From the NCBI RefSeq assembly GCF_001194135.2, contig NC_068981.1, positions 115,681,528 through 115,745,527 of the forward strand: a stretch of DNA of 64,000 nt. The letters run 5' to 3'. Made by a program: the position numbers and the translations under genes. The notes under the pieces are model-generated. The model was not told the DNA's origin. It saw only the letters and a list, made by a program, of their open reading frames with translations, and did not search any database. This DNA comes from Octopus bimaculoides (lineage: Eukaryota). Shown in pieces: positions 3,184-57,845 of this stretch (its first letter is position 1; the number at the start of each line of letters is the position of its first letter).

Positions 3184-3939
3184 GGATCTTTCTGAATTGA
3201 CAGGTGCCACTTGTTTTCTGAACAAAACACTTTCAAACTTGGGATACTGGTAGAATGTGTCATATAAAACATCTTTTTCTCTTAGCCTTCTTAACAAAAA
3301 TTTCTATATTGCAAGTTATTTCATGTTAAAGTTGTCATATTTCTGTAATTTCAACCAATCACTGACGTCTATTCAGCTGAATACAGTTACTGCTGTTTTT
3401 GTAAACAATAAATTTTGCCGGTGTCAAGATCGTTATTCCCTAGTAAGGGTTAGGGTTTTAGAGTTAGGGTTAGGGGGTTAAGGTTAGGGTTATGAGTTAG
3501 GGTTAGTGTTATGAGTTAGGTTATGGCAAAAATAATCATAACCCTAACCATAACTCTAAAACCCGAACTCTAACCCTAAAACCCTAAAGCTAAAACTAGT
3601 ACAAACGCACGAACGATGTTATAAATAACAGTACCGCCGATAGTTGTTGTTGACAAACAATGGCACTAATTTTATTCAAGGGAAAAGATCCCATTACACC
3701 GCACAACGTTTTGTTTACAATCCATAGCAGTAATTGTTTTCACCTCAATAGACGTCAGTGATTGGTTGAAATTACCGAAATATGACAATTTTTTACATGA
3801 AATAACTTCGAATACAAAAATTTTTATTTGTTCTATAAAAACAAAATATACAAGTATACGAAGTTTGAAAGTGTTTCGGTACCAAAAACACTACATAAAA
3901 CATAGATAAAAAGTGGCGCCCGTCAATTCAGAAAGATCC
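3184..3939. mobile_element. GGATC-TIR non-autonomous DNA transposon (copy 1) with internal telomeric repeats
   Basis: TIR GGATCTTTCTGAATTGAC.GG.GCCACTT at both ends. Perfect 8-bp TSD CATTGTGA (3176-3183 and 3940-3947). Degenerate TTAGGG then CCCTAA tracts at about 3445-3590. Confidence 0.92.
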
Positions 3940-4780: not shown

Positions 4781-5359
4781 CGTCAGAATAATAGTAGACT
4801 TACTTGTAAAATAGGACGTGTGCGTTCAATAATGTAATAATACAATGTAATAATGTAATAATACATATATATATATATACATACATACATGCATGCATGT
4901 ATGTATATGAGTATATATATATGAATATACAATAACACAGATGGTTGAGGTTCACTACAACTGTTTCAGACATGATCTTTATTGATGAATTTCTCACCAA
5001 ATACAAAGTAGTGCAAAATGATCCTACCAACCAGGTTACAGCTGAGAGACTCTCTCAGCCATAACCTACGATAGTTGTAAGTAATCATCACCATTTTACA
5101 AGCAATGTCATTTATTTTCAATTTTTGGTGAAAGCATATCTGGTTATGAGGAAATATTTTGCTTCAAAATTGATGAGGTCTAGAAAAAGGAAAAGCAGTT
5201 GACCGTAGCAAATGCATTTCATCTGTCCCCTACAAGCATGCAAAGTTGACTGGTTATGGTATATGCAGGACAAACAAGATAAAAACAAAACAATTAACCT
5301 CACTTTTTGTCAGTTACAACAACAACAACAAAAATAATATTTGAAAATCATTATCTTAC

Positions 5360-5791
5360 TTTGAATTGCCTTTGTATCTTATCTCGATCATTTTCAAATG
5401 CAGCAGCTCTTGCAAGTGCTTGGCTTTCAGCTTGAGTTGCCAAATCTCGTTCACCTCGTAGTTTGGCACAAGTTTTCTGAAGAGCCAACAACTCTGCTCG
5501 AAATTTCTTGTTCTCATTTATTAGCTTTTGTTCTTTCTTCTGCATGTTAGCGATCTCCTGTTCTTTATTTCGCCGATACATCTCAAATTCTTTGTTTTTG
5601 CGTTCAAGTTCCTGGCTGTCTAAGTCGATTGAACGCAAGCTTTCATCTTTGGGTTTTCGAAGTCCTAGACGTCCCCTTGGTTTCATTTCAATCGGGATCC
5701 TTTTAATGACACCATGGCTATTGCCATCACAGTCGGCGCCAATGATATCATCATCATCAGGCGAATGTAAGAAAGAACTGCCAGTTCCCAT
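5360..5791 (-). CDS. NPHP3: Nephrocystin-3 homologue, coding exon 1 (N-myristoylation motif plus coiled coil)
   Basis: ATG at 5791 gives MGTGSS...EFEMYRRNKEQEIANMQKKEQKLINENKKFRAELLALQKTCAKLRGERDLATQAESQALARAAAFENDRDKIQRQFK. This matches the NPHP3 N-terminus as I recall it (MGTASS...ENKRLRAELQALQKT...FEHDRDKVKRQFK). Phase-0 donor GTAAGA at 5359. Confidence 0.93.
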
Positions 5792-8157
5792 GTTGAATAT
5801 ATTTAGTTCCGTAATTTTGAGTATAGGTGGGGGCCAATATGTTACAATAAGAGCCTTTAAGATATATTCACTTTTATATCTAATATTTGGTGGGAAGCTA
5901 ATATCAACTCCTGGAACAAAAAAAAACAACATTTTTTTTACCTTCTATTATTTTGCTTTTCAGGTTAGCATAGCCAAAGTAGCTATGCAAATTCAGACAT
6001 TAATTAAACAGCTAAAATTTGATGCTTTTCATACCATTCATGATCTGGCAGGTGTATTTATTGTTGAGTTGTATTGACTAAAACAAACATGCGGCTCATT
6101 CAAAATTTGTCTACTTTAGTGAGTTTATGATAGAGTTAAAAAAGGGGTGCTTCTATCTTGGTCCAGGCACATGGTAGTTCTCAAACATGTGGAAGTTCTA
6201 CTTCGTTCCTGCTGCCATCAGCAGTGTACTGTAGCTATTTAACCCTTTAGCATTTAAACTGATATTCAAAGCAGTGAGATCAAGCCTCTTACACCTACAC
6301 TACGTTATTCTAAACATAAGCTGTCGTATCATCAAAATCTCAAAGTTACAAGATAATGTATGACTAATTCAAAATGATGTGAATAAATAAGGATTGCATC
6401 TGAATGCTAAAGGGATAATGTACCTATTTACAGCCAGATAGACGTGGGAGGGGGCTTTGCCATATTCATAATGCAACACTATTTGCGGAATATAAACATT
6501 GGTCTACCCACTGGTAATCAGATGCCATTTTGAGTTAGCCTACTGTGAGGTTTGAAGAATATAGTGTTCTTCACTCAATCATAAACAACAGAATGGTTGT
6601 TGCAAAGTTAGAACTGCAGCATTAATAAATGGATTGATTAAAACAGTGGTCTTGTTCTAAAGATGGCTGCTCTTTTGAACATTAAGTAAATAAAAGTGGC
6701 ATGGACATATATCTAATTTACATCTGAAACAGGGAGAAAGAAAGAGAGTAAGGTATCTTACCTATAGCAGCACAGAAAGGTTAATCCATGCAAGACATAT
6801 TTTAGTCAATTTGGGGATGATTTACTTCATTATATATACCTCAATTTACCTAACTACAAGAAATATGCACCAAGCCATCTAGAAATATTACTTTTGATAG
6901 CGTAGAGTTGATAACATGTGTGTGTGTGTTGTGTGTGTTGTGTGAGGAGCGTCTATGTTTTGTGTGTGTGGATGTGTGCACATGTGTGTGTGAGTGTGTG
7001 TGATAGTGGAGATTTATCTGTCATTTTAGAGAATGAATTAGTGAGAGAAACTATTCAAGGTTGCTGCTTGTTTGAAGAACAATAGTTACAATATTCAAAG
7101 CAGTGATCATTAAAATAAAATTAATTCAGAATAATTTGTGCAGCAATGAAATGGCAATATTGGTCCAATGATTAATATTATTATAATTATTCCAGGAAGC
7201 ATGGGAGACAACCTCACTCATGTTTTGATCTAATCTGACTCTGCAGCTAAGCACAAGCTTTCACTGCACTTGCTGAAGTAGTGATGTAAGAATTAGGAAC
7301 TAAATGTACAATGTTGTACATTAGTAGGTTTGAAATTGACATATTTTAGATAATATTTAACTAAGAGACACCAGAAATATGAAAAACAATGGTCAATTTG
7401 TGTTACATAGCATTAGAAGGTTAATTAGACATACTTAACGTATTGCGCATTAAAAGGCTAATTAGACAGTGACAAAAATACAATACCAGGCAATGAGTAT
7501 AATTATCCTAATTAGGGTAATTGACTGTCCTTTCCTCACTGCATAATTATTCTTAATTAATCTTTTAATCATTGCATTAAATATGATAACACTACCTTGA
7601 CACTATCGTTGAATTAAAACTAGGAACTGATTGTTGAAACCACTGGACACATATTTTATTGTAAAGGAGCACATGACTTTTATTTATAATGTATGGATGC
7701 AACAGACGTTATTTATAATACTGTAGTAAATGAGTGAATCTGAGAATAAAAATGAAACTTTGTTAAGAAGAGCTAATGACTTTACAGCCTAATGAAGGAT
7801 ATTTTGGCAAATTATTTCTTCTCTAATAAAATTGTGGCTTTGTGTTAATCTAAAGAATCCATATTTGGATCCAAAAACTCTAGAGAAATCACTAAGTCAA
7901 TAAAGATTGTGAGCTCAGATTTACTGCAGCTCTTCATTGTGACAGAATACCAACTTATATATCTATGTGACATAAATACATGTCAGATCAGGTGAGAGTG
8001 TTAGCTGCAAGAAAATACTGTTCTATCCAAGTGATGTTTGATACATACGTTTCTCATTATGGAACAGGAACCAGGCAGTCTCACTAAGAAGTTAGCAGCT
8101 GAATTTCTTTAACCAATATGCCACCATGTTTTTCTCAATTAATCCAAGGCAATAAGG

Positions 8158-17055: not shown

Positions 17056-17628
17056 GGATCTTTTTTAAAACGGAGGCCACATTTTTCATTAATGTTTTAC
17101 GTAGTGCTTTTGGTACCGAAAGACTTTCAAACTTCGTATACTTATCTATTTTGTGTTATAGAACAGAAAAATATTTTTGTATTCGAATTTATTTCATGTA
17201 AAAAAATTGTCTTATTTCGATAATTTCAACCAATCACTGACGTCCATTCAGCCGATATACATTAAGTGCCGACTACATAAACAAACGATTCTTCGTTTTA
17301 TTTGCTTTTTTCATTTTAAATTTGCTTTAACCCTAACCCTAACCCTAACCCTAACTCTAACCCTAGGGTTAGGGTTAGGGTTAGGGTTAATTGTTTCAGA
17401 ATCGTTTGTTTATGTAGTCGGCACTTAATGTATATCGGCTGAATGGACGTCAGTGATTGGTTGAAATTACAGAAATACGACAACTTTAACATGGAATAAT
17501 TTATGGATTTCTTTTTTTTTAAAGAAGACTAAGAGAAAAAGATGTTTTATATGACACATTCTACCTGTGATCCAAGTTTCAAAGTGTTTCGTTAATGAAA
17601 AATGTGGCCCCCGTTTTAAAAAAGATCC
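17056..17628. mobile_element. GGATC-TIR MITE (copy 2, 573 bp) with a central telomeric palindrome
   Basis: TIR of about 37 bp (GGATCTTTTTTAAAACGG.GGCCACATTTTTCATTAA). TSD ATCTCTTG (17048-17055 and 17629-17636). Confidence 0.95.
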
Positions 17629-19260
17629 ATCTCTTGTACTAAGATATCGATACAGTGATTTTTGTCGGTGCGTAATGAACTTATGATAGACTATTGCTAA
17701 CTAGCTATCAGACTTAATTGGCAACTGGAGCCAAGACTCAGATTCAATGGCAGAGTTAACCATGACAAAATAGTGTCTCAAGACTAATACTAAGTACTGA
17801 AGTAGTTTCTTATTGTCAGTTGTCTTGCTCGATGAGTTGTGAACTCAGCGAAGAAAACTTAACTAAAAAAAACAAAATACTCGCTGATTGTTCAATGATT
17901 CTATTCTTTAATATGATTTTCTTCAACTACAATTTGAATCATACTTAGGACGCGTGAAAGGAATATAATTGTGCGTCAGTTCTTAGCAGGTACTTCATTT
18001 TGTCTATCTTGGAAGTTTGAAAGGCAAAGCTGGCTACGACAGGATTTGAACAGAAGTTGAAGGGCCGTAATACGCTCATATTTTCACATCCTTCCAATTC
18101 GTTAAAGTTTTCGTTCAGATCAAATATTTCTTCTGTTAAGAAACAGAAAGGAAGTAGTTGTATATCTACTTGTTAAAGTTATTCGTTTGCGTGAGGTCTG
18201 TAATCCATTTGGTCATATTTATACACCTTGAATTATTCGTTGAAGCACTTTTTTTGCATTATCTGTCTCACAAATGTCACCCCACACGAGAGCAGTCTTA
18301 GAAGATTTTAATTATTCACTGCGTGCTAATCATGTGATATGTTATGAATCCTTCAACCATGCATGATACCTATTTGAAATAGCTATTTGAGTGTGAAATG
18401 TCATCGATATGAACAGAACACAATTCTAATAAAGAGGGATAAAACAGAATGGTCAGCGCTTCGGTCTATCAATTAGGCTAGAAAACTAGCCTTTATGTGT
18501 GGGAGTAAATTTCTAAATAACTGAGATGAGTTAAGCATTATCTTTAGAGACATGTCAGTTGTCTAAGAGTGCTCTCACTCCCAGAATAGAACTAAAGGTT
18601 ACTGTTTCGAATCCAGTTTGACACTTTGTATGTATTCTGGAGTAAGACATCCGATGATAATCGGAGATCAAACCAATTGAAACTTGTCAGTATGAATATC
18701 GAAGACTATTATTTCTGTCCAAAGTTACTTGCCGGGCAAGGTTCTGTTTTTATGAAAGGACAGTAGTTGTCAACGTAATACAAGTGTCCCCTCTTCAAGC
18801 CACCGATATTGTCTATGAAAAGGCAAAAACCTATTAAAATTTGGACGTAATGTCATCGCAGATATTGCTGTAAGGAGGCAAAGAATCAACTGGTATTGCC
18901 CTACATTCTGATAGACTACCTTGAACCAATACTTTATACATCAACATTGAACAGATGAAAAACAAAATTGGCCTCGACAGAATTTGAGCTCAGAGCGTTG
19001 AGAGCTGAAATTAATACCGCGATGCATTTTGCCTTTCATTGTATCGGCATTGCCAATTTGTTGTGAAATAGCAGAGTCATTTAAATATCGTCTAAAATAC
19101 ATTGCGGTATTTGTTCCGGACCTTCAAATTCCATAGAAGTCAACCATGTCTTTCGATTCCAAAGGTCAGGTTAACAGTCCTTAATATCACAAGCTGATTA
19201 AAACATATAGATTGACCTTATTTAAAAATTCAATGCAAAAACGAAACAAACGTCAGCTAC

Positions 19261-19342
19261 CGCTGTGAGCAGGATTTGAACCTGCGCGGGCATTGCCCAT
19301 TGGATTTCGAGTCCAACGCCTTAACCACTCGGCCATCACAGC
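19261..19342 (-). tRNA. tRNA-Ser(CGA)
   Basis: GCTGTGATGGCCGAGTGGTTAAGGCGTTGGACTCGAAATCCAATGGGCAATGCCCGCGCAGGTTCAAATCCTGCTCACAGCG: perfect 7-bp acceptor stem, A and B boxes, long variable arm, T5 terminator downstream. Confidence 0.96.
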
Positions 19343-20349
19343 AAGATTAATAAAAGCTCAAAATATATTATTGATAAAAAGAAAGGGAGACAGTATTTCT
19401 AAAAAGGTGCAGCAGAACTTTATTTTCAGTGAATAATTTATCTGATTTCTACGACAGCTGTCAGTACTTGGAACATAGTCTAGTAACTGATAAAAAGTCT
19501 TCCTCTATTTCTGCAAACTTATATTTGAAACAATGAATGGATGATTCATTTATCAAGGAATACTTTTTATAACCAAGACAAGAAATACTATGATTACGTT
19601 AATACAAAACCTATGGCACGGGTATAGCTGGATAATTGAAGAAATCCTACTCACGATTATGAGGTCCTGGATTCGATCCTACTACGCGGTATGTTGCGTA
19701 AGTGTCTTCTACCATGTTCTGGAGTCAACTCAAACCTCAAAAGAGAAATCTTGGTAGACAAAAATGCGGGGGCCCGTCTGTTGGGCTGTACCGGTAATTT
19801 AAAGGTCGAACATTGACACATCACTGGCGTAGCTAGAGGGGGAAGTCTACCTCGGCACTTTCATGGAAGACGCACCACTTTTGGGTCTGCTGTTGGTAAT
19901 ATGTACTTTTGTGGAGACCTGGGGATGGCAAAATGAAGGGCCTCCACGGGTGACACACACTGTATCATGTTGACTCTATCTGAAGATTTATTAAAGATAA
20001 AAATATCGGTAGAATATTCAACCACAATAACTCAAGAAGGTGGTTCGATTGATTGAACATTTGGAAACAGAAAGAGGGCCAATTTGATACAAAGACATTG
20101 GTGCATGAAGATTTGATTAAAGAAGAAGACAGATGGATTGATTTGCCCGAAATTTTACACAAACACTGAAATAGCAATTTTTAATAAAGGCTTTTTTTTT
20201 TTTTATTAATTGATGCTACGCAGCCCAAATTACAATATACAACTTAAGAAATATTGTTTTTGTCTTTCTTGGCAACTAGGCAAAATTGTCAACCATTCGG
20301 TGAATATTTTTGCCAGAAAACATGTTAGAATAATTTAATTCAGTATTTA

Positions 20350-22909: not shown

Positions 22910-22991
22910 CGCTGCAGACAGGATTCGAACCTGTGCGGGAATAACCCATTGGATTTCGAGTCCAACGCCTTAACCACTCGGCCACCACAGC
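22910..22991 (-). tRNA. tRNA-Ser(CGA), second isodecoder
   Basis: 82-nt cloverleaf with CGA anticodon, two G-U pairs in the acceptor stem, TTTTT terminator just downstream. Confidence 0.93.
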
Positions 22992-23189
22992 TCAGTGGCT
23001 GGAAGCGTTATTAACTATAGTAAAGTAGTTAGCATCTGTTGCAGAAGTCAGAATTTATCAAGTGCGTGTGTAAGACGTGGGCGCGCGTATGTCTATGAGT
23101 GTGTGTGTGTGTGTGTGTGTGTACTATATCGGAGCATGGCAAAGAGGTTGATACATCCGCTTCTAAATCACGAAGTTTCAAGTTCAATC

Positions 23190-24735
23190 GGATCTAGTTC
23201 AAAACGGGGGCACCAGTATTTTCTTAACGAAACACTTTGAAACTTGGGACACTGGTAGAATGTGTCATATAAAACATCTTTTTCTCTTAGTCTTCTTAAG
23301 AAAAAATATTATATTGCAATTTATTTCATGTTAAAGTTGTCGTATTTCTGTAATTTCAACCAATGACTGACGTCCATTCAGCCGAATACATTAAGTGCTG
23401 ACTACGTAAACAAACGATTCTCAAACGATTCTGGCGGTGATAAAATTATTATTTCCTTGTCAAAAAATGGCTGAAGCATATTGGCAGTAGCTAATAAACC
23501 TTTCTATTATAGANNNNNNNNNNNNNNNNNNNNNNNNNNNNNNNNNNNNNNNNNNNNNNNNNNNNNNNNNNNNNNNNNNNNNNNNNNNNNNNNNNNNNNN
23601 NNNNNNNNNNNNNNNNNNNNNNNNNNNNNNNNNNNNNNNNNNNNNNNNNNNNNNNNNNNNNNNNNNNNNNNNNNNNNNNNNNNNNNNNNNNNNNNNNNNN
23701 NNNNNNNNNNNNNNNNNNNNNNNNNNNNNNNNNNNNNNNNNNNNNNNNNNNNNNNNNNNNNNNNNNNNNNNNNNNNNNNNNNNNNNNNNNNNNNNNNNNN
23801 NNNNNNNNNNNNNNNNNNNNNNNNNNNNNNNNNNNNNNNNNNNNNNNNNNNNNNNNNNNNNNNNNNNNNNNNNNNNNNNNNNNNNNNNNNNNNNNNNNNN
23901 NNNNNNNNNNNNNNNNNNNNCGAATCACGTCGGGGGTCACCAGTATATAAAAAAGTGGGTTATTGCAGATCAGCGGGCTGCGTGTTCGAATCACGTCGGG
24001 GGTCACCAGTATAGGAAAGTTGGTTATACACCATTAGATGTATACCTGACTTTCCTATATAAAATTAAAGAATTAAACGGAACGCTGAACTCCAGACTAT
24101 CAACCTAAACAACATTTTATTCAGGTGGTAAATATATACATCTTTAGCTCTTGTTTGTTGTTACAGCTTCTGTGTGTGTGAGCATAGTTGTTGGGACGTT
24201 GTTATGTAGATGTAAGCGAGCTGTCGAGCGTAAGTTCGAAAGATGAAGAGAGACAGCTAAACACGTAAAGAGACTGTCTCCAGAGTTGGAATGTTGGAGA
24301 CACTGCTTGACACGTCCATGCTCATGGCCGGCCGACCAAGAAAGAGAATGAATTGAGCGGGAACGCTTGGTTATTGAATTGCACGCATGCATGAGACTAC
24401 GCATGCGCACAGCATTACTACAAGGGTTAGGGTTAGGGAAAACGAACACACGCGTGTTGCCTCTCTGCAAAATGTCAGAAGTAATGGAGATTAAATACGC
24501 TTTACACCGCTTAAACTGCCAAAGGAGTAAGTATAAACAGCTGAATACTTGTCAGTGATTGGTTGAAATTATCGAAATAAGACAATTTTTTACATGAAAT
24601 TAATTCGAATACAAAATTTTTTTTCTGTTCTATAACACAAAATAGATAAGTATACGAAGTCTGAAAGTCTTTCGGTACCAAAAACACAACATAAAACATA
24701 AATGAAAACTGGTGCCCCCGTTTTGAACAAGATCC
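23190..24735. mobile_element. GGATC-TIR element (copy 3, contains a gap) inserted into a tRNA-derived SINE
   Basis: TIR GGATCT.GTTCAAAACGGGGGCACCAGT. TSD GTTCAATC (23182-23189 and 24736-24743). GGGTTAGGGTTAGGG at about 24423. Confidence 0.92.
23921..24008 (+). repeat. 66-bp tandem repeat of tRNA-Trp 3' half + CCA + 23-nt spacer (at least 2 units, runs into a gap)
   Basis: CAGATCAGCGGGCTGCGTGTTCGAATCACGTCGGGGGTCACCA at 23966-24008. Same 3' part at 23921-23942, period 66 bp. Confidence 0.85.
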
Positions 24736-24839
24736 GTTCAATCCCATTGTGCAGTAATTTAATAAACTGTTTTCGTCCATAGCCTCGTGGAGACTCGAAT
24801 TTGGACGGAAACTATGGAAGCCTACAACATGAGACAGAC

Positions 24840-25121
24840 CAGTGGTTCTCAACCATTTTTCACTTATGAACTCCTTTAATTCCTAGTTTACTCCACTGGA
24901 CACTCATAGCCGTTCGAGTTTTTAAAAACTCCTATTATATTTCTATAATCAGATATTATTTGGAATTGCAAAATAAATAAAAAAACATGTTAAAATACTT
25001 TGTGTATTGTACAAGTATAACCAATTTGTTGCATATAAATTTTACCAACAAAATCTTACACGAACCCCTAAGGGTCATATGGACCTCTAAGAGTCCTATG
25101 CACTCCTGTTGAGAACCACTG
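24840..25121. mobile_element. hAT-like MITE
   Basis: 14-bp TIR CAGTGGTTCTCAAC / GTTGAGAACCACTG. No matching TSD. Confidence 0.7.
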
Positions 25122-25401
25122 GGATCACCGGCAACTCGTGTATAGGCACTGCGGAACTGCAGCACCTCCTATTTCCACTCGATATTATCAATAACGTTCA
25201 ATATAATGAGTCCTTTTTTCTTTATTCCTTTCTTTATACTTGTGCATTATATAATCCTTAAGCTTAATGTCAGTAACCATCTCTTAGTTTATGAAAAAGA
25301 TACAAAAGTCCTTGTCTAGAACTGTGTACTTCACAGTTCCAGCAAAGTGGTGTTTGGCTATTGTGTGCATGCTCACATGTCCGAGATCAGAAGCTGCACG
25401 C

Positions 25402-29566: not shown

Positions 29567-30117
29567 CTATTCATGAAGTGAAATATCAGAGGTCTTGGTT
29601 GGTGTGTTTGCCAATGTCATGAAGCCGTTAAATAATTCGTTTGTTTCATTACTGCGCAATGTATCCAGATGAGTGTTTAAAGGGTAATCAGCAGGTAATG
29701 GCTCATCAACTCTAGATCTATAGAAAGATGACTGGCTTGCATCTGACATCTGCACGATTTCTGTGGAGTTAGATTTTGGTGCTTCATTATTTGAGCAATG
29801 ATAATACATGGGGATATTTGAATGCTCAAATTCATTGTCATTGAAATTATATTTTCCAGCTACAAAATTACCATCCGTTTGCCCGATTTCCGAATTGCCA
29901 AAATAGCTAGATGGGTATGCACAGAGGTTTGGGTAGTTGACGTACTGTCTTGGTGGACAAAATAATTGTGTTTGTGGTCCAACTGGTGCAATCTGTTTAT
30001 GAACAAAGCACTCGTTTGCTTGGTATAAAGGTATTGAATATGGACACATATGTATAGGTAGTTCCTGCTTTATGTAATTTTTCTTGTTTGCATTGTCATT
30101 AACCACAGGAATTAATC
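29567..30117 (-). CDS. SOHLH2: SOHLH-like terminal exon 10 (P/Q/Y/N-rich C-terminus)
   Basis: Polypyrimidine-AAAG acceptor in phase 1, contains the 179-aa ORF, stop at 29567-29569. The spliced CDS totals 2016 nt, i.e. 671 aa plus stop. Confidence 0.8.
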
Positions 30118-30428
30118 CTTTAGTTTAAAAGAAAAAGAAAATATTAAAAAAAAAAATTAATACAAAGAAACAAAAATCTATTTCTCATTCATATATGTTA
30201 TCAATGTTTATTTTAATCAACAAACATGATTTGAACTTAAACGGTCGAAAATATCAAAATCACCACTATAAATTACCTTGAAAGTTTCAAATTGATGAAA
30301 AAAAATCTAACATAAGTTATATGCGAATTGAATACTTCTGTATTATTGGTTGCCTTGACTGATCATACATGCACATACTTTCTACTCAGAAACTCGTCCC
30401 TCTAAGGCGGCGAGCTGGCAGAATCGTT

Positions 30429-32714
30429 TGTCGTTGTTTTTTAGTAGAAAGTGTGTACGCTATATGCGAGTCCTGTTATTGTTAACGTTATTTCTTGGAT
30501 TGTTGAATCATTGTTATTACTTGAATTTGTTAGAATCTTTATTTGTTTTCCCCATTTATGGGCGAAGTTGTGTAGAACATTATTATGGAGAATAGACAAG
30601 TGCAAAATGGCAGTTATGCTGCGGTGACTGGAAAAAGCCTGTCAGTGGAGCTACTGCAGGTCCGTGAAATAGAAGTCAAAGACAAGGACTTCAAGAAATA
30701 CACCACCTTGTTGAGAAAGGAGGGAGACCGTCTCAGACTGACGCCTCCCAAGGAAGTTATTGAGAATACAGAAAAGAGAACTATCATCTATAGAACGCTA
30801 AACATGGCGTCGAAGAAAGTAGAGATAGCAGCCGTTGAAGTGGTAGAGGAAATGCTTGAAAGAGGTGAAAGAATCGACTACATTCTACACCAGAGGACGG
30901 GAGTTCAGCACGGTGGAAGTGCGCTTCGAAAATGAAGCAAAGTAGTACTCCACTGTAGCCTTGAAATCAGCGGAGCGGGCACTACCTACTTACTGTGGCA
31001 AACGTGTGGCTAGAGTAAGGATAGGTAGAGTGACCCCTGAAATTGACGAGGTATGGCTGGTGGCAGTCATCCTCTGTCATACAGAGGAAGAAGCAAAAGT
31101 TTTTAAAATGTCAAAGACTACAAAGGTGAACTGATGGGGATATGGGCTAAAAGTAATAGGATCTTTTTTAAAACGGGGGCCACATTTTTCATTAATGTCT
31201 TACGTAGTGTTTTTGGTACCGAAAGACTTTCAAACTTCGTATACTTATCTATTTTGTGTTATAGAACAGAAAAATATTTTTGTATTCGAATTCATTTCAT
31301 CTAAAAAATTGTCTTATTTCGATAATTTCAACCAATCACTGACAAGTATTCAGTTGTTTACATTTACTCCTTGGCTGATTAAGCGATGTAAAGCGTATTT
31401 AATCTCCATACCTTCGTTTTATTTGCTTTTTTCATTTTAAATTTGCTTTAACCCTAACCCTAGGGTTAGAGTTAGGGTTAGGGTTAGGGTTAATTGTTTC
31501 AGAATCGTTTGTTTATGTAGTCGGCACGTAATGTATATCGGCTGAATGGACGTCAGTGATTGGTTGAAATTACAGAAATACGACAACTTTAACATGGAAT
31601 AATTTATGGATTTCTTGTTTTTTTAAGAAGACTAAGAGAAAAAGATGTTTTATATGACACATTCTACCAGTGTTCCAAGTTTCAAAGTGTTTCGTTAATG
31701 AAAAATGTGGCCCCCGTTTTAAAAAAGATCCAAGTAATAGTCCATATAAGCCTGGCAGACCTCCATAAGAATGTGGAAGAGCTGGTGTTGCCAGATGAGA
31801 CTAGATTAAGGATTGTTGTGGAGGGTAGACCTCCAATATGTTTTGCGTGTGGAGTAAGGGTACACATGAAGGCTAAGTCACCCCAGAAACACGAGGAGGA
31901 AATAATAGAAACAGAAATTCAAGAAGAGAGTACAGCTGTAGCAGAGGATAAAATGGACAAGCAATCTACGGTGGTGAAAAGAAAAAAGAATTTAGAATCA
32001 CCACCTAAAAGCTCCAAGGAAAAAAAAAAAAAAGAAGAAAACAAACGAGGAACAAGAAAGAAAAGAAAAATGGAAAATCAAATGAAAAATCAAGTGAAAT
32101 GTGAACTCAGGAACCGTTGTCTTCAACCAGTAAGGAAAAAGGAGCATGGCAGGAGAATGAAAACGAAAGAGACAGCGAATTTGAGACAGAGAAAATTGTG
32201 TCGGGCGAAGAGAGTGGTGAAAGATATCAGAGAAAGAGATGCCTACAGGGAGAAATTTACGAAACCGCGTAGTATACGAAAAATGTGTTGAAATCGAAAA
32301 GATGGTAACAAAGATGATAAATGTTATCAGAGTAAAATTGGCAAACCATGAAGGTAAGAAGGGCGTGCTATTGGAGAGAGATTAATAGAACAGTTTGGGG
32401 GAAAAAAAAAAGAGTTGAAATATCACCACTTCAGTTTAGATACGACGAGTTGCCGCCTGTTGTAATTTTCGACTATATAGTACAATATTCGTCGCAATTT
32501 TGTGTTAAAAAAAATACGTGACTAAAGTGAACTGTAATTTAAAAGAACAATAAAATGAAACTGCTTGCTTTGGGGGGCGAGTAAGCCATTTCATCCTCAT
32601 TTTTTTTGTCATAGTCCATTCGAAATGTGTTTTATATGTACCCCAATGTCTTGTTTTGTCTGTCCTTATGGTGTCCACTCTTTATAAAGGCCATGTGCCT
32701 AAATAAAAGAAATT
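30429..32714 (+). mobile_element. ORF1-only L1/Tx1-type retroelement, copy 1 (degenerate, MITE-interrupted)
   Basis: Gag-like ORF with VVEGRPPICFACGVRVHMKAK knuckle, 3' tail ...AAATAAAAGAAATT, and 17-bp TSD GAGC(T/A)GGCAGAATCGTT (30412-30428 and 32715-32731). Confidence 0.8.
31159..31731. mobile_element. GGATC-TIR MITE (copy 4, 573 bp) interrupting a retroelement ORF1
   Basis: Same TIR as copy 2. TSD AAGTAATA (31151-31158 and 31732-31739). Removing it restores GYGLKVIVHISLADL. Confidence 0.95.
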
Positions 32715-32758
32715 GAGCAGGCAGAATCGTTAGCACGCCGGGCGAACTGCTTAGCGGT

Positions 32759-34412
32759 CTCTGTGAAGTTGATGCATGAGTTTGTGTTGAACTGTTTATT
32801 GAATTGCTGCCAAAGATGTTGGTTGTTGTTTGTTTCCCATTGTGGAAGATGGGGAACCGGGGTTGTGCGGCCGCGGCGAGCAAAGGAGTGGACACGCGAG
32901 AGTTAGAGGTTCGCGAGAGTTAGAGGTTCGCGAGATGGGGGTGGAGCCTAAAAAGATGAAGGAGAGTGAGAAATTAATCACAATGGAAGGAAACATTTTT
33001 AAGCTGACACCGCCTGAAGAGCTATCGGCCAACGTGACAGAAAAAGAACGGTTATATTTAAAACCATGAAGGCAGCCACGAGAAAGATAGAAATAGCACC
33101 AATAGAGGCCATAGAAGAATGTGTTAAGAATATAAAAAGATTCACAACATACATTACGAGAAGGAGAAGATACGTCACTCTGGAGGTGCTCTTCACAACG
33201 GAGGAGGAAGTAATAAAGCACTCCACAGAGGCAGTAAGGACAGAGGAATGGATACTCTTGCTTTTGTACTGTGGCAAATGTGTGGCCAAGGTGCGAGTGG
33301 GTAAAGTACCACCCGAATTGAAAGAAGAATGGCTGATGACAGCCATAACGTATAATATGATTGACGGGAAGATTCTGAAGGCTACAAGAACTCAGAAGGT
33401 GAACTACTGGGAATATGGTATCGAATTAACGATTCAGGCAACGACGGAGGACTTGAATAGTGTAGTAGATGAGATTGTGCTGTTTGAAGATGTGAGAATG
33501 AGAGTTACTGTGGAGGGTAGACCACCATGTGGAAAAAGGGGCCACATGAAGGCATGTTGCACCCAAAGAAAGCCACAAACAGAACAGGAGGAGAGACATG
33601 AGAGTGTGGACCAGGTAGTACAGGACATGGCAACAGAAAAAGAAACGGAGAATTGGATTCACTATGGTTAAAAAGAAAAGAAGGTGGAGCGGAGGAATGA
33701 GTTCTTCGCCAGAGAAGCAGAAAAAGAAGAGAGAAGAGGCGAGAAAAAAAAACTGTGAAGGAGGGCAGTAGGAAGGAAAAAGAAAGTGGAGTTACCAGTA
33801 GAGAAAGAGTCGGAAACCCAACTGTATGAAAGTGAGATGGAGAGACTATTTATGAAGGAAGAAAAGAGAGAACCAAAAGTCCAAGAGAAAAAGAAAGAAG
33901 ATACGAGGAGGAGACAGAGTGTGGTATTATGTGACGTACCCAAAAAATGTTAAAACAGAGAAAAAGATAATCAAGCTTCATTCAATAGTAAGAGTGAAGG
34001 TGCCTTCATACGTCTACGCGGAGGATATGAAGGCAATATTGATTGAAGAGGAAAACTACAGAAAATCGAAAAAGATGTGTGGAGATAGCATTGACCCACC
34101 AGGAGTGGAGGTGCAATTTAAAGAGTTACCACCAGTGGTAAATTTAAGAGATATCGATCCACTAATGAAGTTCTACTAAAGACAAAAAAAAAGTATGAAA
34201 TTAAAGAAAAAAAAGAGCAATTGTAGATAATACATATAACGGTTCAAATGGTAATGTATGGAAGTGGGGCCCATGCGTCCATTTTCATTATTTCATTTTT
34301 ATATAATTTTCATCTCATTTACATTCGTTTTATGTTTTTGTCCCCACTGTAGTCTTGTCTGTCCTTATGGTGTCCCCATCTATGTTTAGGGCTTTATGCC
34401 TAATAAAGAAAT
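32759..34412 (+). mobile_element. ORF1-only L1/Tx1-type retroelement, copy 2 (frameshifted)
   Basis: ORF pieces 32830-34179 homologous to copies 1 and 3. Shares the 3' motif TTGTCTGTCCTTATGGTGTCC...AATAAAGAAAT. No endonuclease or RT coding sequence. Confidence 0.8.
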
Positions 34413-34423
34413 CGGTATCCCGT

Positions 34424-35450
34424 CTCTGTGAAGTCATTGCGTGAGTTTATGCTGAAATATTTATCGAATCATTGCCATTGTTATTTGATTTGAATTGCTG
34501 TTAGAACTATTGCCGTTGTTAATTTGTTAATTGTTGTCCCCCCCCCCCATTGTGGGAAAATGGAGAAGAAGCAGGAGGGAGGCCCAAGTTATACGGCCGC
34601 AACGAACAGAGGAGTAGATGTGCAAGAGTTGGAGGTGCGCGAGATAAAGGTGGAGCCTAGAAGGATGAAGGAGAGTGAAAAATTAATCACTAAGGAAGGT
34701 AATATTTTGAAGCTAACGCCACCTGAAGAATTATCGGTCAACGTGTTAAAAAGAACGGTAACATTTAAAACCATGAAGACAGCCACAAGAAAAATAGAGA
34801 TTGCACCGATAGGAACCGTAGAGGAGTGTAGCAAGTAGTTGAAAAGATTTACAGCATGCATTACGAGAGGGAGAAAATACGTCACTGTGGAGATGCGCTT
34901 CACATTAGAGGAGGAAGCAATAAAGCACTCCACAAAGGCTGTAAGGTCAGAAGAATGGATGCTCCTGCCTTCGTACTGCGGCAAACGTGTGGCCAAAGTG
35001 CGAGTAGGTAGGGTGTCACCCGAGTTAAAGGAAGAATGGCTGATGACAGCAGTAACATACAATATGAAGGATGGGAAGATTTTGAAGGCTACTAGGACCC
35101 AGAAGGTAAACTACTGGGGATATGGTATTGAATTGACAATACAGGCAACTACGGAGGATTTAAACAGTGTGGTGGATGAGATTGTGTTGCCAGAAGATGT
35201 AAGATTGAGAGTTAGTGTAGAGGGAAGGCCGCTGATATGTTTCACATGTGGAGAGAGGGGCCACATGAAGGCGTGGTGCACCCAACGAGTACAACAAGCA
35301 GAACAGGTGGAGAGACAGGAGAGTGTGGACCAGACATTGGTAACAGAAAAAGAAACAGAGAATGGATTCACTATGGTTAAAAAGAAAAGGAGGAGGAGCG
35401 GAGGAATGTGTTCTCTGCCAGAGAAGCAGAAAATCTTTCCTGGGTACCCT
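34424..35450 (+). mobile_element. ORF1-only L1/Tx1-type retroelement, copy 3 (3'-truncated)
   Basis: Intact CCHC knuckle CFTCGERGHMKAWC. In-frame TAG at about 34836. 5' start CTCTGTGAAG shared with copy 2. Confidence 0.8.
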
Positions 35451-36164
35451 GTATCTATCATCGTTCAGGAACCGACCAAATAAGTACTAGATGAGCATTA
35501 AAGTTGATAAAGCTGACTGTATCGTGTCATTACATGTCTTCGCCACGTGCTAACTAATAATTTATGTCAATAAATCATTGAAATACTTACGGATTTCTGA
35601 ATTTAAAATGCTACTTTGTATAGGTTTCGAATTTGTTGAGACAGTGGTGGTCATTCGACTGGGAATAGAATTATCTTTGAAGTTTTTCTTATATTCAAGA
35701 ATTGTTATTTCATCACTCTCTGCAGTTCCAGTCATTTCCAATCGAGGTTCTTTATGGACAGCATATTGTAGATGTGTATCTGAAAGTGTTTGGCACGTTA
35801 TCTTATATAGCATACTATAAATAGGATTCGAAGAAACAAATAGAAATTAATGCGTTTGATTAACAAGAGAAGTTTTACTAGAAGATCGCTCAGAACAAAG
35901 ATAATTTCAGTTTATTACTGGTATTTTATTTTTACCTATGACAAAGTAACTCCGACAGGATTGGCATGTAAATTCCTAATGATTATGTAGTCTTGTTCAA
36001 TGCTGTTTTGGGCATTAGAACCTCTGGTTTGACTTTAATGAGCATAAAACCTATATATCAGATGAAAGGAGGTTGGAGGTATACTGTTAATACCTATATT
36101 AGGAAATTGGCTGTGCTTTGGAAATTCTTTTCAGCGTGTCTCATTACGGAAAAGTGATTTATCA

Positions 36165-38375: not shown

Positions 38376-39964
38376 CTGCAATGAAAATAAACGACTTGAA
38401 TCCATGCAAATTTACAAACCACGAAGGCTATTATGTGAATAAGTTCGTACAATGTCATTAATGCATTACATTTTCTTAAGCTGCATCCACCTTGTTGCAC
38501 CATACTCAATACAATTGTGTACCATAGTGAATGAGGTACATGGTAAGCTAATCAGTATAAACAGTAGTTACATGAAGCAGTTTTAGGATGTTCACTATTG
38601 ATACTATTGAAATTCTTTCATATATTTTTCGTATGGCTTAGAAGTAATGAGAAGAGTGAATTTAATAGAACACACGTAATTTGTAATGTATAAGTGAGAC
38701 GAATCAGTGAAAGAGCTTCTACACAGTCAATTGCCTTCCTTGAAATAGCAGCGTAGTTGCCCTTATATGGCAGCACCAGATGAGTATCTTGATTCTTTAG
38801 ATATACAGTTTCTGTGACTACTTTATTCAAATACATTCATAAGAAAAGTGTTATTTGAAAGAGTTCTGACTGCTATTTCTAGCAGATCAAACAAGAGCAA
38901 GATGTTTCCTCTTCTGTCCAATCATCGAAATCATTTCAATGGTGTATCAGCAAACTTGAAGATTGCAGAGTACCACTATTAGAAGTTCAAGTTCCTAAAT
39001 GCTGGTTTGTTTGTGACGGAGTGCGAATACCATAAATATTTAGAAATGGAAGAAATGAAATACACGTTAAGTGTTATGAATTTGCCAATGACATAAAAAT
39101 ATCTTTGGGAAGTTGAACTCCTGATTAATACCAGACAACCAATTTGTACCCTGTCATTAGAGTTTTATTTGTGGTCAAGATAATACTTTCAGTATCCGGG
39201 AACATCTAATGAATATATCCAAGAACTGTCACATGTGTATTTGTAAACTATACGGTAGCAGAGTTATGGAATTCAGAAATATTTTGTTAGATTTCTGGTT
39301 CTTTCAAGGAAGTCACATCTAACAGGATAGCGTCATGAACCTGAGTAAGATTTATCTTATTGACTCAACACTAATAAATCTGTATTTCAGCACTTACCGA
39401 ACTCTGTTAGCGCTATAGTCCAAGGAAACTTGTGTCAGCTGACAATTGAAGCCAAACCGAATTCTAGAATTTGTCAGGAGCTACTGCTTGCTCTATCTTA
39501 AATCTAAAACATATATTTTCCAGAGGTGATGGATATCTTGACACTATTCTAATAGTCTTAGAGTAATAGAAATAATCGCGTCATTCAGGGACGTTATTGT
39601 TGACAACCAACTTGTTATAATGAAGGCATTAATTTCACAGTAATATACTGAGTTTGGTCAATTAGCTGTCTGCTACAACCCAAATAGTCTTAACTTATTG
39701 AGGAGCAGCGTTCACTCATGGGGCTGCTACAACTGATGAAGAGAAAAAACACTGAAACACAGTGAAAGGGAACTCAATTCATTAAAAGATCCCAACCAAC
39801 CTCAATTTTTTTTTATCCATGTGTGATATGTAGCAAAAAGGTTTTCCCAACCAGAGTAGCCTAATCAGTTATTTCTTAATACATCGCTTCATTAATAATT
39901 TAATACACAGAAACATTAATAAAAAATTTAAAATGTAAGCAGATTATTATGATTTTTTTTTTAC

Positions 39965-40112
39965 CTGAGACTGTAATTCTTGTGGTAAGATAGTGTTGAC
40001 TATTTTTATGTAATTAACACCTAATTCTAGAATGGACGCCATGTCAGTTTTCCTGCCTCTGACGTATGGTAGTAGTACTCTTAATTGACCACAGCTTTCT
40101 TTAATGCGTTCT
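39965..40112 (-). CDS. SOHLH2: SOHLH-like exon 7, helix-loop-helix (ERIKESCGQLRVLLPYVRGRKTDMASILELGVNYIK)
   Basis: Close match to the SOHLH2 bHLH as recalled (ERIKYCCEQLRTLLPYVKGRKNDAASVLEATVDYVK). TTTGCAG acceptor and GTAAAA donor, phase 2 to 0. Confidence 0.93.
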
Positions 40113-40709
40113 CTGCAAATGAATGAATAAATATATAAATACGTTAATAATATCCAAAGCGATAAATTAACGGTTTAGTACTGTATACAAATCTAAGACG
40201 GTACTGCTCTAATACATGGATATCAAATTCTTAGATCGAATGCCAAAATAGAACTTTTAGTTGTTTGGCAACGACTCATTTACCAACTTGCTACAACTAA
40301 GTCACATATAATCACCTCCATCTGTATTAATAGTAGCTTCTAAAACAGCTTCTGAGCTGGTAACATGTCCATCACATATAGGTATGTCCACCTGACTCAC
40401 TTCCATCTTCTCCACTTGTCATCAACAGTGGGTCCCACTACTCAAGGTCCACACTGACTGCTTCGCATAAACCTTCATATGAAGCAAATCATCCTTCTAG
40501 AAACTATTTGCCAATACCCCCCCCCCNNNNNNNNNNNNNNNNNNNNNNNNNNNNNNNNNNNNNNNNNNNNNNNNCGCCACAAGGAGATTGAAACTGAACA
40601 CATTTCAGGCTAAATATCAGCCTGAGAAGACTTGCAAAGGTCAGAGTTTCTCTCCTCCACATCTTCCTTTTCAATAATACAAAAATAGTCTCAATATCGT
40701 ATGCGTGTG

Positions 40710-46065: not shown

Positions 46066-46334
46066 TTTTTGTATCAGGTTGAGAAGTAAGTGCTATATCC
46101 TCAAGACACTAAGTTGCATGAAGTGAATTATATGTTCTTCCTTACAAGCTTCTACTTTGTAAACGAGAGGAGTGTTTTTACAATGCTTTGATGAAAGACA
46201 CCGCCACGTGCTATACAGAGCAATCAATAATGAACGACTAAACCAAACCACTTATCAACATTACAGAAAAACTATGCACAAATAAAGCAAAATAGACATA
46301 ATTTATAAAAAATATTTTAGTGAAAACGACTTAC

Positions 46335-46831
46335 CTAATGGAAGTTGTAAGACTAAGTAACTCTTGATTGACTAGTGGGTTTACTAGAAGCCATATCAAG
46401 CTATAGGCTTGCCTGTTGCACATCTCATACGCACTTTCATCATCCATACACACTTGCACTTGATGACCAATAGTGAGCCGGGCTATTATTTCAGTTAGTT
46501 CTGTACACCATTTCAAGTTGCCTATCACTAAAGAGACACCGGCTGAGCACAACGGAGTTGATTGTGGTGATGGTGAGGCAGTTGGAATTGGTGGGCAATC
46601 TGAGGTTGTTCGTTGAGTAGCTGCAAGTGGTGAGCTTGGAGAAAGTGACTGAGCTGAAAGTGGTGATTGTGAAGTTGAATTATTAAGGCAATTGGGATAC
46701 TTATCTTTGGATGGCCCTGAATCACACAATACTTCTGTGCTTGTTGGAATCAAATCTGACGAAGAATCATCTGAAGTTTCAGGACTTGAACAATTGGTAC
46801 AAGTAAGATTTTTTTCATTGCCATCGTTGAC
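46335..46831 (-). CDS. SOHLH2: SOHLH-like exon 2: Ser/Pro-rich linker plus first half of the receiver-like domain
   Basis: TTGTTTAG acceptor, 497 nt open, GTAAGT donor in phase 2. Confidence 0.85.
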
Positions 46832-55443: not shown

Positions 55444-55714
55444 GAGTGGTTCTCAACTGGGGTTCTCATGACCGGGGGTGGGGTGGGGTGGGGGGCTGTT
55501 GATATAAGATTTTGTTAAAAATTATGTGCACTAAATTGGTTATGCTTCCACAATACACAAAATATTTTAACAATTTGTTAAGACAATTCCTAATAATATT
55601 TTAATTATAAAAATATAATAGGTTTTTTTAAAGCTTCAAATGGTTATAGGGCTCCTATTGGGGTTAAATAGGAATCAAAGGGGTTCACAGCCAAAGAATG
55701 GTTGAAAACCACTG
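55444..55714. mobile_element. hAT-like MITE related to 24840-25121
   Basis: AGTGGTTCTCAAC / GTTGAAAACCACTG ends. Flanks ATTTAGAC and ATTTACTC (6/8 match, possibly a decayed TSD). Confidence 0.6.
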
Positions 55715-57095: not shown

Positions 57096-57339
57096 TCAGT
57101 TCCTTTTTTTGATAATTTCAAGTGCTCCTACAATCACTGGTATTGTAACCGTCTTGAGATACCACATCTTTTCGATTTCGATTAGCAGATCTTTAGCAGA
57201 TTTGAGCTTATCAAATTCTTTTGCCGAGATGTTATGGTCACAGGGTATACTTTTGTCCTTCACAACAATATCTGGTTTATTTGCCCTGATGGTGCGATCT
57301 GTACATACTGGGAAGTCCCAAAGAATAATTACATTGGCC
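57096..57339 (-). mobile_element. R4/Dong-type non-LTR retrotransposon, C-terminal RLE fragment
   Basis: ILWDFPVCTDRTIRANKPDIVVKDK...KDLLIEIEKMWYLKTVTIPVIVGAL. Confidence 0.82.
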
Positions 57340-57845
57340 ACCGCCGCCATCCCTTTCAGGGATAGCCACCGTCAAGACCAGGTCTTGATTATTGCAGCCA
57401 CCCTGCTCGAAACCTCCGTCCAGTTCTTCTCTATATGGAGGCCTGGTTCAAACCAGACTCCCAGCAATTTAACCAGTCCCTCCGTCCAGCACTCAACAAT
57501 GCTGTCTGAAGGCATTGACTTGCCAACCCAGGTGCTGAACTGCAAGCTGACCGACTTTTCCCGGTTGATCTTTGCTCCTGCCACCGTCTCGTAAACCTCA
57601 ATAGCCTTACCCACTTCACGTAGGCGTGCTACTGTGGTAACGCTGATAGTGATATCGTCCGCGTAAGACCAAACAAACTCTTCTAAACCTGGTTCTCTCT
57701 AGATGTCACTCAACTTTAGCAGTAGGGGGTCAAGAACCACCGCATACAAAAGTGGTGAGAGCAGACATCCTTGACGAACCGAGCGTCTGATGCAGAACGG
57801 CTTCGGAAGGAAACCGTTCTCCCGAACTATCGAGTCAATGTGATA
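57340..57845 (-). mobile_element. L1/Tx1-clade reverse transcriptase fragment (degenerate)
   Basis: SVRQGCLLSPLLY...YADDITI...YETVAGAKINREKS...KLLGVWF motifs, with stops. Confidence 0.88.

Follow-up and report, generated by a model that had tools for sequence, protein, structure and literature searches.

A CCA-ended tRNA-Trp 3' fragment at the center of an octopus miniature transposon, tentatively read as a lengthened retroelement primer-binding site

Results

We analyzed a 64,000-nucleotide stretch of the Octopus bimaculoides genome (contig NC_068981.1 of assembly GCF_001194135.2, positions 115,681,528 to 115,745,527 of the forward strand, hereafter the window). A palindromic, non-autonomous DNA transposon in this window, a MITE (miniature inverted-repeat transposable element) with terminal inverted repeats (TIRs), carries in its center copies of the 3' part of a tRNA-Trp ending in CCA (Table 1). 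An earlier note on this DNA had described these copies as two 66-bp units, each consisting of a 43-nt tRNA fragment and a 23-nt spacer, abutting a gap of about 407 N. The gap was found as described. The 66-bp spacing also stands, but the units are not both complete, as one full unit and one 22-nt piece are visible.

An end-to-end alignment of the 43-nt unit with human tRNA-Trp and its CCA, taken from the complement given in PMC6379413, yielded 38 matches, 4 mismatches, and one extra G. It extends from anticodon position 35 to the terminal CCA, in agreement with the earlier proposal that the fragment is a tRNA-Trp 3' part and starts inside the anticodon loop. For tRNA-Gly (taken from the same source) and for the two tRNA-Ser genes of the window, the match to the unit is confined to the T loop. 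The T-arm hairpin is retained in the predicted fold of the 43-nt unit, and a B-box-like GTTCGAATC is retained as well. Judged from this alignment, the tRNA-Trp identity of the fragment is solid. ARAGORN and the Rfam tRNA model made no call on the fragment, even at E up to 10, and it is therefore not a gene. The fragment represents neither a functional tRNA gene nor a tRNA-derived short interspersed element (SINE), as it comprises positions 35-76 only, lacks an A box, and yields no cloverleaf call.

Both visible copies terminate in CCA. The tRNA-Ser(CGA) genes of the window, located on the minus strand at 19260-19343 and 22910-22991, 3.65 kb apart, are followed by GTAGCTGACG... (GTAGCT..) and TATTATCTTTTT, and neither encodes CCA. 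The premise of the earlier note that CCA is absent from genomic tRNA genes thus holds for the set covered here, which consists of these two tRNA-Ser genes. The presence of CCA in both copies and its absence from the tRNA-Ser genes together point to a mature tRNA as template. As already suggested in that note, reverse-transcribed mature tRNA-Trp would be the most economical source of the fragment. The second tRNA-Ser gene lies 198 bp from the MITE, and its variable arm has TGGGTTATT in common (14/18) with the spacer/unit junction at 23956-23973. Over 9 nt, the spacer also matches the variable arm of tRNA-Ser, which we consider likely to be due to chance.

What can be seen head to tail is a single full unit, a 22-nt piece of another, and a third spacer that has diverged. 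A repeat search identified a stretch of 27 nt that is identical between the partial and the full copy. The second copy is followed by GTATAGGAAAGTTGG... (in a longer reading GTATAGGAAAGTTGGTTATAC), a diverged version of the spacer without the TATA-like motif or the A6. Of the B box, TATA-like motif, and antisense T6 previously assigned to each unit, the B-box-like GTTCGAATC is confirmed, but the TATA-like motif and the A6 (the antisense T6) occur in one spacer only. Tandem Repeats Finder made no call on the 66-bp repeat, because just one full and one partial unit are visible. The 1.3 units in view do not show the proposed tandem array to be a long one. That the contig ends inside the repeat suggests that more units may exist. 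The tRNA parts are identical between the copies (27/27), whereas the spacer differs from its counterpart at about a quarter of the positions. One simple duplication followed by uniform decay does not account for this pattern, which fits either homogenization within a longer array or units derived from different templates.

The 24-nt core of the unit has no second locus in the 64 kb at up to 3 mismatches, with 0 matches expected by chance. The 66-bp unit is open in two reading frames. A protein database search with the peptide of a 4-fold repeat of the unit returned nothing, and exact-product look-ups were empty for the open reading frames (ORFs) adjoining the units and for P0001 and P0004. Used as DNA patterns, the unit and a conserved MITE core had 0 matches in collections of viruses, metagenomes, and prokaryote genomes. 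The gap flanks are not mirror images of each other, apart from a weak AT-rich similarity.

We next consider the minus strand. Read in this direction, the 43-nt copy corresponds to a tRNA-Trp primer-binding site (PBS) that is lengthened from 18 to 43 nt and contains one extra base, as had been noted before. A PBS is recognized by a complement of 12-18 nt or more to a tRNA 3' end with its CCA, and TGGTGACCCCCGACGTGAT provides such a stretch, with one extra C. Proceeding from 24422, the minus strand starts with TGTAG... directly after (CCCTAA)2, followed by a TATA-like motif (24137-24126), an AATAAA (24112-24107), a hairpin, one base, and TGGTGACCCCCGACGTGATTCGAACACGCAGCCCGCTGATCTG. The two motifs are located ~100-125 nt upstream of the tRNA complement, which begins TGGTGACCCCCGACG... 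(TGGTGACCCC...) one base after the hairpin. The hairpin has a predicted stability of -24.1 kcal/mol (z -6.5), and its left arm (24009-24031) resembles the spacer. Rfam returned only sub-threshold microRNA and snoRNA look-alikes for the hairpin at 24010-24059. Going by the order of these motifs, the layout matches the U3, R, U5, and PBS of a long terminal repeat (LTR) retroelement that uses tRNA-Trp as primer, except that the complement measures 43 rather than 18 nt.

We searched for comparable arrangements with a 28-nt pattern composed of the tRNA-Trp PBS and 10 further tRNA bases. The pattern was found in two unrelated eukaryote-like contigs, L003 and L004, which are filed under bacterial metagenome-assembled genomes (MAGs) and look like animal DNA mis-binned into prokaryotic MAGs. 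Both contain a 5'-truncated tRNA-Trp 3' part that ends in CCA, 39 nt long and starting near position 38 in L003, and 32 nt long and starting near position 45 in L004. On the PBS-sense strand of both contigs, 0-4 nt separate the PBS from a preceding stem-loop, and 250-480 nt upstream there is a TATA box. The CA expected at an LTR terminus is present in both (L003, ..CTCA ATAG TGG; L004, ..CACA AC TGG). The PBS-sense strand of L003 runs on into gag-like ORFs, and two CX2CX4HX4C knuckles are readable in the ORF at 435-896. The combination of a hairpin with an over-long tRNA-Trp complement thus recurs, and in at least one case it is placed where a PBS is expected. L003 also contains a tRNA-derived SINE-like sequence at 7790-7880 and a ~925-bp tandem duplication within the gag-like region (12-1489).

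The placement of the units inside a DNA transposon, as stated in the earlier note, is confirmed by TIRs, by a target-site duplication (TSD) of 8 bp, and by three shorter relatives within the window. The relatives were identified by BLAST inside the 64-kb window, and their TSDs were read directly, so that TIRs and 8-bp TSDs characterize all four window copies as TIR transposons. The TIRs of the host MITE measure 28-32 bp and match at 27/28 positions, and long sub-terminal inverted repeats are present. The three relatives are palindromic MITEs centered on a telomere-like palindrome, (TAACCC)n(TAGGGT)n. In the copy at 3184-3939, the palindrome halves are found in reversed order, and the center is longer. 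The tRNA part is absent from 3/3 relatives and thus present in one of the four family copies. The segment from ~23470 to 24422 is foreign to the MITE family; it covers the gap, units, and hairpin together with ~360 bp that are unique. It is located exactly where the relatives have their telomere-like center, and it replaces half of the central palindrome.

With its 8-bp TSD, the MITE may be a hAT-, P-, or Merlin-like element; the window contains no autonomous partner. The usual hAT terminus is YARNG; the host TIR instead begins with GGATC. We looked for a paralogous empty site of the MITE at the second tRNA-Ser gene and found none. Two other stretches of Octopus DNA (L001 and L002, together 37 kb) are free of MITE copies, units, and tRNAs.

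Apart from itself, the unit is matched best, over the whole window and both strands, by the left TIR of its own carrier. Here, CGGGGG-CACCAGTAT matches the unit end CGGGGGTCACCAGTAT, including the fifth G and the GTAT, both of which are absent from tRNA-Trp. Of the TIR segment GTTCAAAACGGGGGCACCA, 19/19 bases can be aligned with the 3' end of canonical tRNA-Trp when three short gaps are allowed. Shuffled versions of the unit reached the TIR score in 0 of 5000 trials for the left TIR and in 8 of 5000 for the right. The tRNA-like state, a resemblance of the TIRs to a shortened 3' end of tRNA-Trp with its CCA, is special to the unit-bearing copy, as the TIRs of the other three MITE copies are less tRNA-like. 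Possible causes of the likeness are chance atop a family TIR with CGGGGGCCAC, gene conversion, or a homology-guided insertion of cDNA. The TSD of the unit-bearing MITE, GTTCAATC, is itself T-loop-like.

Table 1. Features of the tRNA-Trp-bearing MITE and its relatives (positions within the window)
Feature	Position	Strand	Sequence or remark
MITE relative	3184-3939		8-bp TSD CATTGTGA
MITE relative	17056-17628		8-bp TSD CAAGAGAT
Left TSD copy, 8 bp	23182-23189		GTTCAATC
Host MITE, palindromic non-autonomous TIR transposon	23190-24735	+	1546 bp including the gap
Left TIR	23190-23221	+	GGATCTAGTTCAAAACGGGGGCACCAGTAT (GGATCTAGTTCAAAACGGGGGCACCAGT; also GTTCAAAACGGGGGCACCAGT)
Assembly gap	23514-23920		407 N; directly abuts the partial tRNA-like copy
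Partial tRNA-Trp 3' end copy, 22 nt	23921-23942	+	CGAATCACGTCGGGGGTCACCA; T loop to acceptor plus CCA, at contig edge
Spacer, 23 nt	23943-23965	+	GTATATAAAAAAGTGGGTTATTG; diverged copy of the left arm of the hairpin after the last unit
Full copy, 43 nt	23966-24008	+	CAGATCAGCGGGCTGCGTGTTCGAATCACGTCGGGGGTCACCA; tRNA-Trp positions 35-76 including CCA
Stable hairpin, candidate U5 stem-loop	24010-24059		21-nt arms, 8-nt loop, one base from the tRNA complement; U5 candidacy applies to the minus-strand reading
Unique sequence, candidate LTR remainder (by reading)	24060-24422	-	Not in other MITE copies
(GGGTTA)2.5	24423-24437	+	Remnant of telomere-like palindrome; right edge of the foreign insert
Right TIR	24704-24735	-	GGATCTTGTTCAAAACGGGGGCACCAGT
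Right TSD copy, 8 bp	24736-24743		GTTCAATC
MITE relative	31159-31731		8-bp TSD TATTACTT

Other features of the window

A second small TIR element is located to the right of the MITE (24839-25122), with a perfect 15-bp TIR, CCAGTGGTTCTCAAC, and a 75% relative at 55505-55714. Several related gag-like ORFs that contain a CCHC knuckle are lined up over 30585-35483 on the plus strand, with 78% identity to an O. bimaculoides protein; the ORF at 34839-35483 matches Octopus bimaculoides and O. sinensis proteins, and one of these matches maps to assembly GCA_001194135.2, in which gaps are as frequent as in the window. The ORF at 31698-32291 begins inside the TIR of the MITE at 31159-31731. On the minus strand, we found a fragment of a reverse transcriptase of the long interspersed element (LINE) type at 57099-57698, with a YADD motif and a weak RVT_1 match. 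The same strand carries exons of a bHLH gene (46334-46831, 39950-40174, and 29570-30124) that resemble SOHLH-like genes of other molluscs (HLH domain, E 4e-6); a protein search with this gene returned no Octopus protein among the matches. Coding exons of a coiled-coil protein that starts with MGTGSS... are located at 5351-5932 and 561-803, again on the minus strand, and show a weak bZIP-like match.

Discussion

We tentatively interpret the tRNA-Trp units as a fragment of the 5' end of an LTR retroelement. Read-through into the primer tRNA would have lengthened its PBS, and the fragment would then have been duplicated locally; we assign this reading a probability of about 0.45. It builds on the tRNA-Trp identity of the fragment, its CCA, the hairpin, the place inside the MITE, and the analogues elsewhere, all of which are directly supported. 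On the minus strand, a putative LTR of ~410 bp (24422 down to 24009) would end in the strong stem-loop, followed by one base and the 43-nt tRNA-Trp complement. The CCA would be present because a PBS pairs with a mature tRNA. Plus-strand DNA synthesis may have run into the primer tRNA up to the anticodon loop, 25 nt past the usual 18, and the lengthened tRNA copy would then have become fixed. Products of such read-through have been described for retroviruses. The last 23 nt of U5 together with the 43-nt complement would have been duplicated head to tail at least once, by slippage or by template jumping of the reverse transcriptase, and further copies may sit inside the gap. The center of the MITE is a plausible site of break and repair, at which a stray cDNA or other DNA may have been captured.

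Several observations weigh against this interpretation. The putative LTR ends in ...CTTTCCTATAC followed by TGG, with no CA within 5 nt of the PBS, whereas both analogues have a CA. No second LTR, polypurine tract, insert TSD, or gag-pol was found in the window. The MITE arm resumes ~80 bp past a gap estimated at 407 bp, so that at most a fragment of a retroelement can be present. Neither the rest of the window nor the 37 kb of other Octopus DNA contains a second copy of 24009-24422. A tandem arrangement of U5 end and PBS is no standard product of retroelement replication, and an LTR fragment leaves the likeness of the host TIRs to the tRNA 3' end unexplained. Finally, the match of L003 to DUF1759, a gag domain of BEL/Pao elements, is weak (22 bits) and falls below the Pfam cut-off.

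The earlier note proposed that a free CCA-tailed tRNA-Trp 3' half, cut in the anticodon loop, had been reverse-transcribed alone, multimerized, and captured by the DNA transposon. The copy indeed begins at position 35 in the anticodon loop and ends in CCA, and the tRNA parts of both copies are identical. Positions 58 and 37 of known eukaryotic tRNA-Trp carry methylations that block reverse transcription, and since the copy passes both, a run-off at a cut end explains the 5' limit as well as a modification stop. However, only one 5' boundary is visible at our locus, and the limits seen across the three loci (35, ~38, and ~45) argue against a fixed cleavage site. A free half also does not explain the hairpin directly after the CCA, a layout common to all three loci, and no poly(A), LINE tail, or TSD surrounds the unit. 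We regard this origin as unlikely, and a stress-cleaved half as template is not supported. The earlier note had itself raised a standard LTR-PBS junction as a competing explanation. By analogy with L003 and L004, whose hairpins are placed alike, such a junction would fit the architecture better than a tRNA half does, but neither a named element nor the terminal CA was found. It is decidedly unlikely that the copy is a chimera comparable to those of U6 and L1, made by the reverse transcriptase of a LINE or Penelope element that switched from another RNA to the mature tRNA-Trp 3' end and halted in the anticodon loop. Such a template switch would yield a 5'-truncated copy with its CCA fused straight to non-tRNA sequence, as observed, and a LINE-type reverse transcriptase fragment is present in the window. 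LINEs and Penelope-like elements also far outnumber LTR elements among Octopus repeats (table in PMC13282606). Yet the sequence after the CCA lacks a poly(A) and any LINE or SINE tail and does not match the reverse transcriptase-bearing repeat of the window, and the hairpin-PBS layout recurs beside gag-like ORFs elsewhere.

An origin without any reverse transcription, from a DNA-level fragment of a tRNA-Trp gene or pseudogene that gained its CCA by chance or by recombination with the TIR-like CACCAGTAT, is quite unlikely in our view. CCA is expected by chance after about 1 in 64 tRNA genes, and the match of the unit end CGGGGGTCACCAGTAT to the left TIR extends to the fifth G and the GTAT that tRNA-Trp lacks. 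Conversely, no simple crossover of tRNA-Trp (CGGGGTCA) with the TIR (CGGGGGCACCAGTAT) gives both the T and the fifth G, CCA follows a truncated tRNA-Trp 3' part at two independent loci as well, and the tRNA genes of the window are without it. The repeat could also be an artifact of assembly at a contig end, with one real tRNA-like copy. The partial copy is the very first sequence after the gap, and the assembly is rich in gaps (6 in the 64 kb, and 4.9 kb of N in the 20.7 kb of L001). Both copies are nonetheless contained in one contig, and the join ...CCAGTATATAAAAAAGTGGGTTATTGCAGATCAG... is unlike what follows the second copy and is thus not a simple overlap that failed to merge, which renders an artifact very unlikely. 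A functional array spread by the MITE, whether as a source of tRNA-Trp fragments in sense or antisense, as a decoy against retroelements primed by tRNA-Trp, or as a binding site for TFIIIC, is barely credible. Its B-box-like GTTCGAATC is kept, the T arm folds, and the carrier TIRs look like a tRNA 3' end. Against this, an A box is missing, neither ARAGORN nor Rfam calls a tRNA, TATA and A6 occur in one spacer only, and the unit is found in one of four MITE copies. None of the roles envisaged in the earlier note (decoy, TFIIIC array, or source of small RNAs) is supported by our data. Highly improbable, too, is a MITE subfamily in which tRNA-Trp/PBS-like TIRs and an internal array form an anti-retroelement or cDNA-capturing module. 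Such a module may soak up the tRNA-Trp primer, yield antisense or sense RNAs resembling 3' tRNA-derived fragments against tRNA-Trp-primed retroelements, or attract PBS-ended cDNA through homology; if real, it would represent a DNA transposon bearing an anti-retroelement or cDNA-capturing module.

Most likely, the units are passenger DNA, interesting junk rather than a new RNA system, and represent an ordinary if neat fragment of a retroelement PBS. Should the LTR-fragment reading be correct, the locus would preserve a small fossil of retroelement replication, in which the primer tRNA was copied up to the anticodon loop and left stranded at the fragile center of a MITE. It would then also be a useful example for annotation: where a CCA-tailed tRNA 3' fragment adjoins a hairpin, a PBS on the opposite strand should be the first reading to consider.

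Comparison with known systems

We compared the locus with other elements that combine mobile DNA with tRNA-derived or tandemly repeated sequence. Dada transposons (Kojima and Jurka 2013, PMC3706591), known from molluscs, have tRNA and snRNA genes as their targets, and our host MITE is likewise a DNA transposon associated with tRNA sequence. Dada elements, however, lack TIRs, generate TSDs of 6-7 bp, and reside inside small-RNA genes (PMC3706591), whereas the host MITE has TIRs of 28-32 bp, 8-bp TSDs, and non-tRNA flanks, which together rule out a Dada identity. Short tandem repeats carried by MITEs are the subject of a minisatellite-in-MITE paper (PMC4596501) and of a review (PMC9659126). The repeat there also occupies the variable middle of a non-autonomous TIR element; the core in our MITE differs in being a retro-derived tRNA fragment, in comprising 1.3 units, and in being present in one family copy only. 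For Tf1 and HIV-1, single-strand annealing allows cDNA to insert, independently of integrase, at sites with homology to the PBS (Li et al. 2022, PMC11042837). This would offer a route for PBS-ended cDNA into DNA that resembles a PBS, as the host MITE TIRs resemble the tRNA-Trp 3' end, but our insert is located at the MITE center and not at a TIR. If the likeness between TIR and tRNA were general in the subfamily, this would suggest that homology had guided a capture or conversion between the cDNA of a retroelement and a DNA transposon.

With the PBS of LTR retroelements that use tRNA-Trp, the minus strand shares the 18-nt complement including CCA, the hairpin one base away, and the TATA-like motif and AATAAA upstream. 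It departs from the standard LTR-PBS junction in its 43-nt complement with an extra base, the missing terminal CA, the tandem repeat, and the location within a DNA transposon. A strong-stop-DNA model for tRNA-derived retroposons was reportedly put forward by Ohshima, Koishi, Matsuo, and Okada in 1993 (PNAS 90:6260) in work on a squid SINE. In this model, a CCA-ended tRNA part joined to U5-like sequence is said to represent the primer tRNA still attached to retroelement cDNA. The SINEs in question reportedly contain a whole tRNA with A and B boxes, are related to tRNA-Lys, and are dispersed by retroposition. Our locus resembles the model in that a CCA-ended tRNA part is joined to U5-like sequence, in a cephalopod in both cases. 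It differs from these SINEs in that only the 3' 43 nt of a tRNA-Trp are present and no SINE-like spread is apparent. If our interpretation as a lengthened PBS is correct, the octopus MITE would add a cephalopod case to the old idea that hybrids of primer tRNA and cDNA can seed new repeats.

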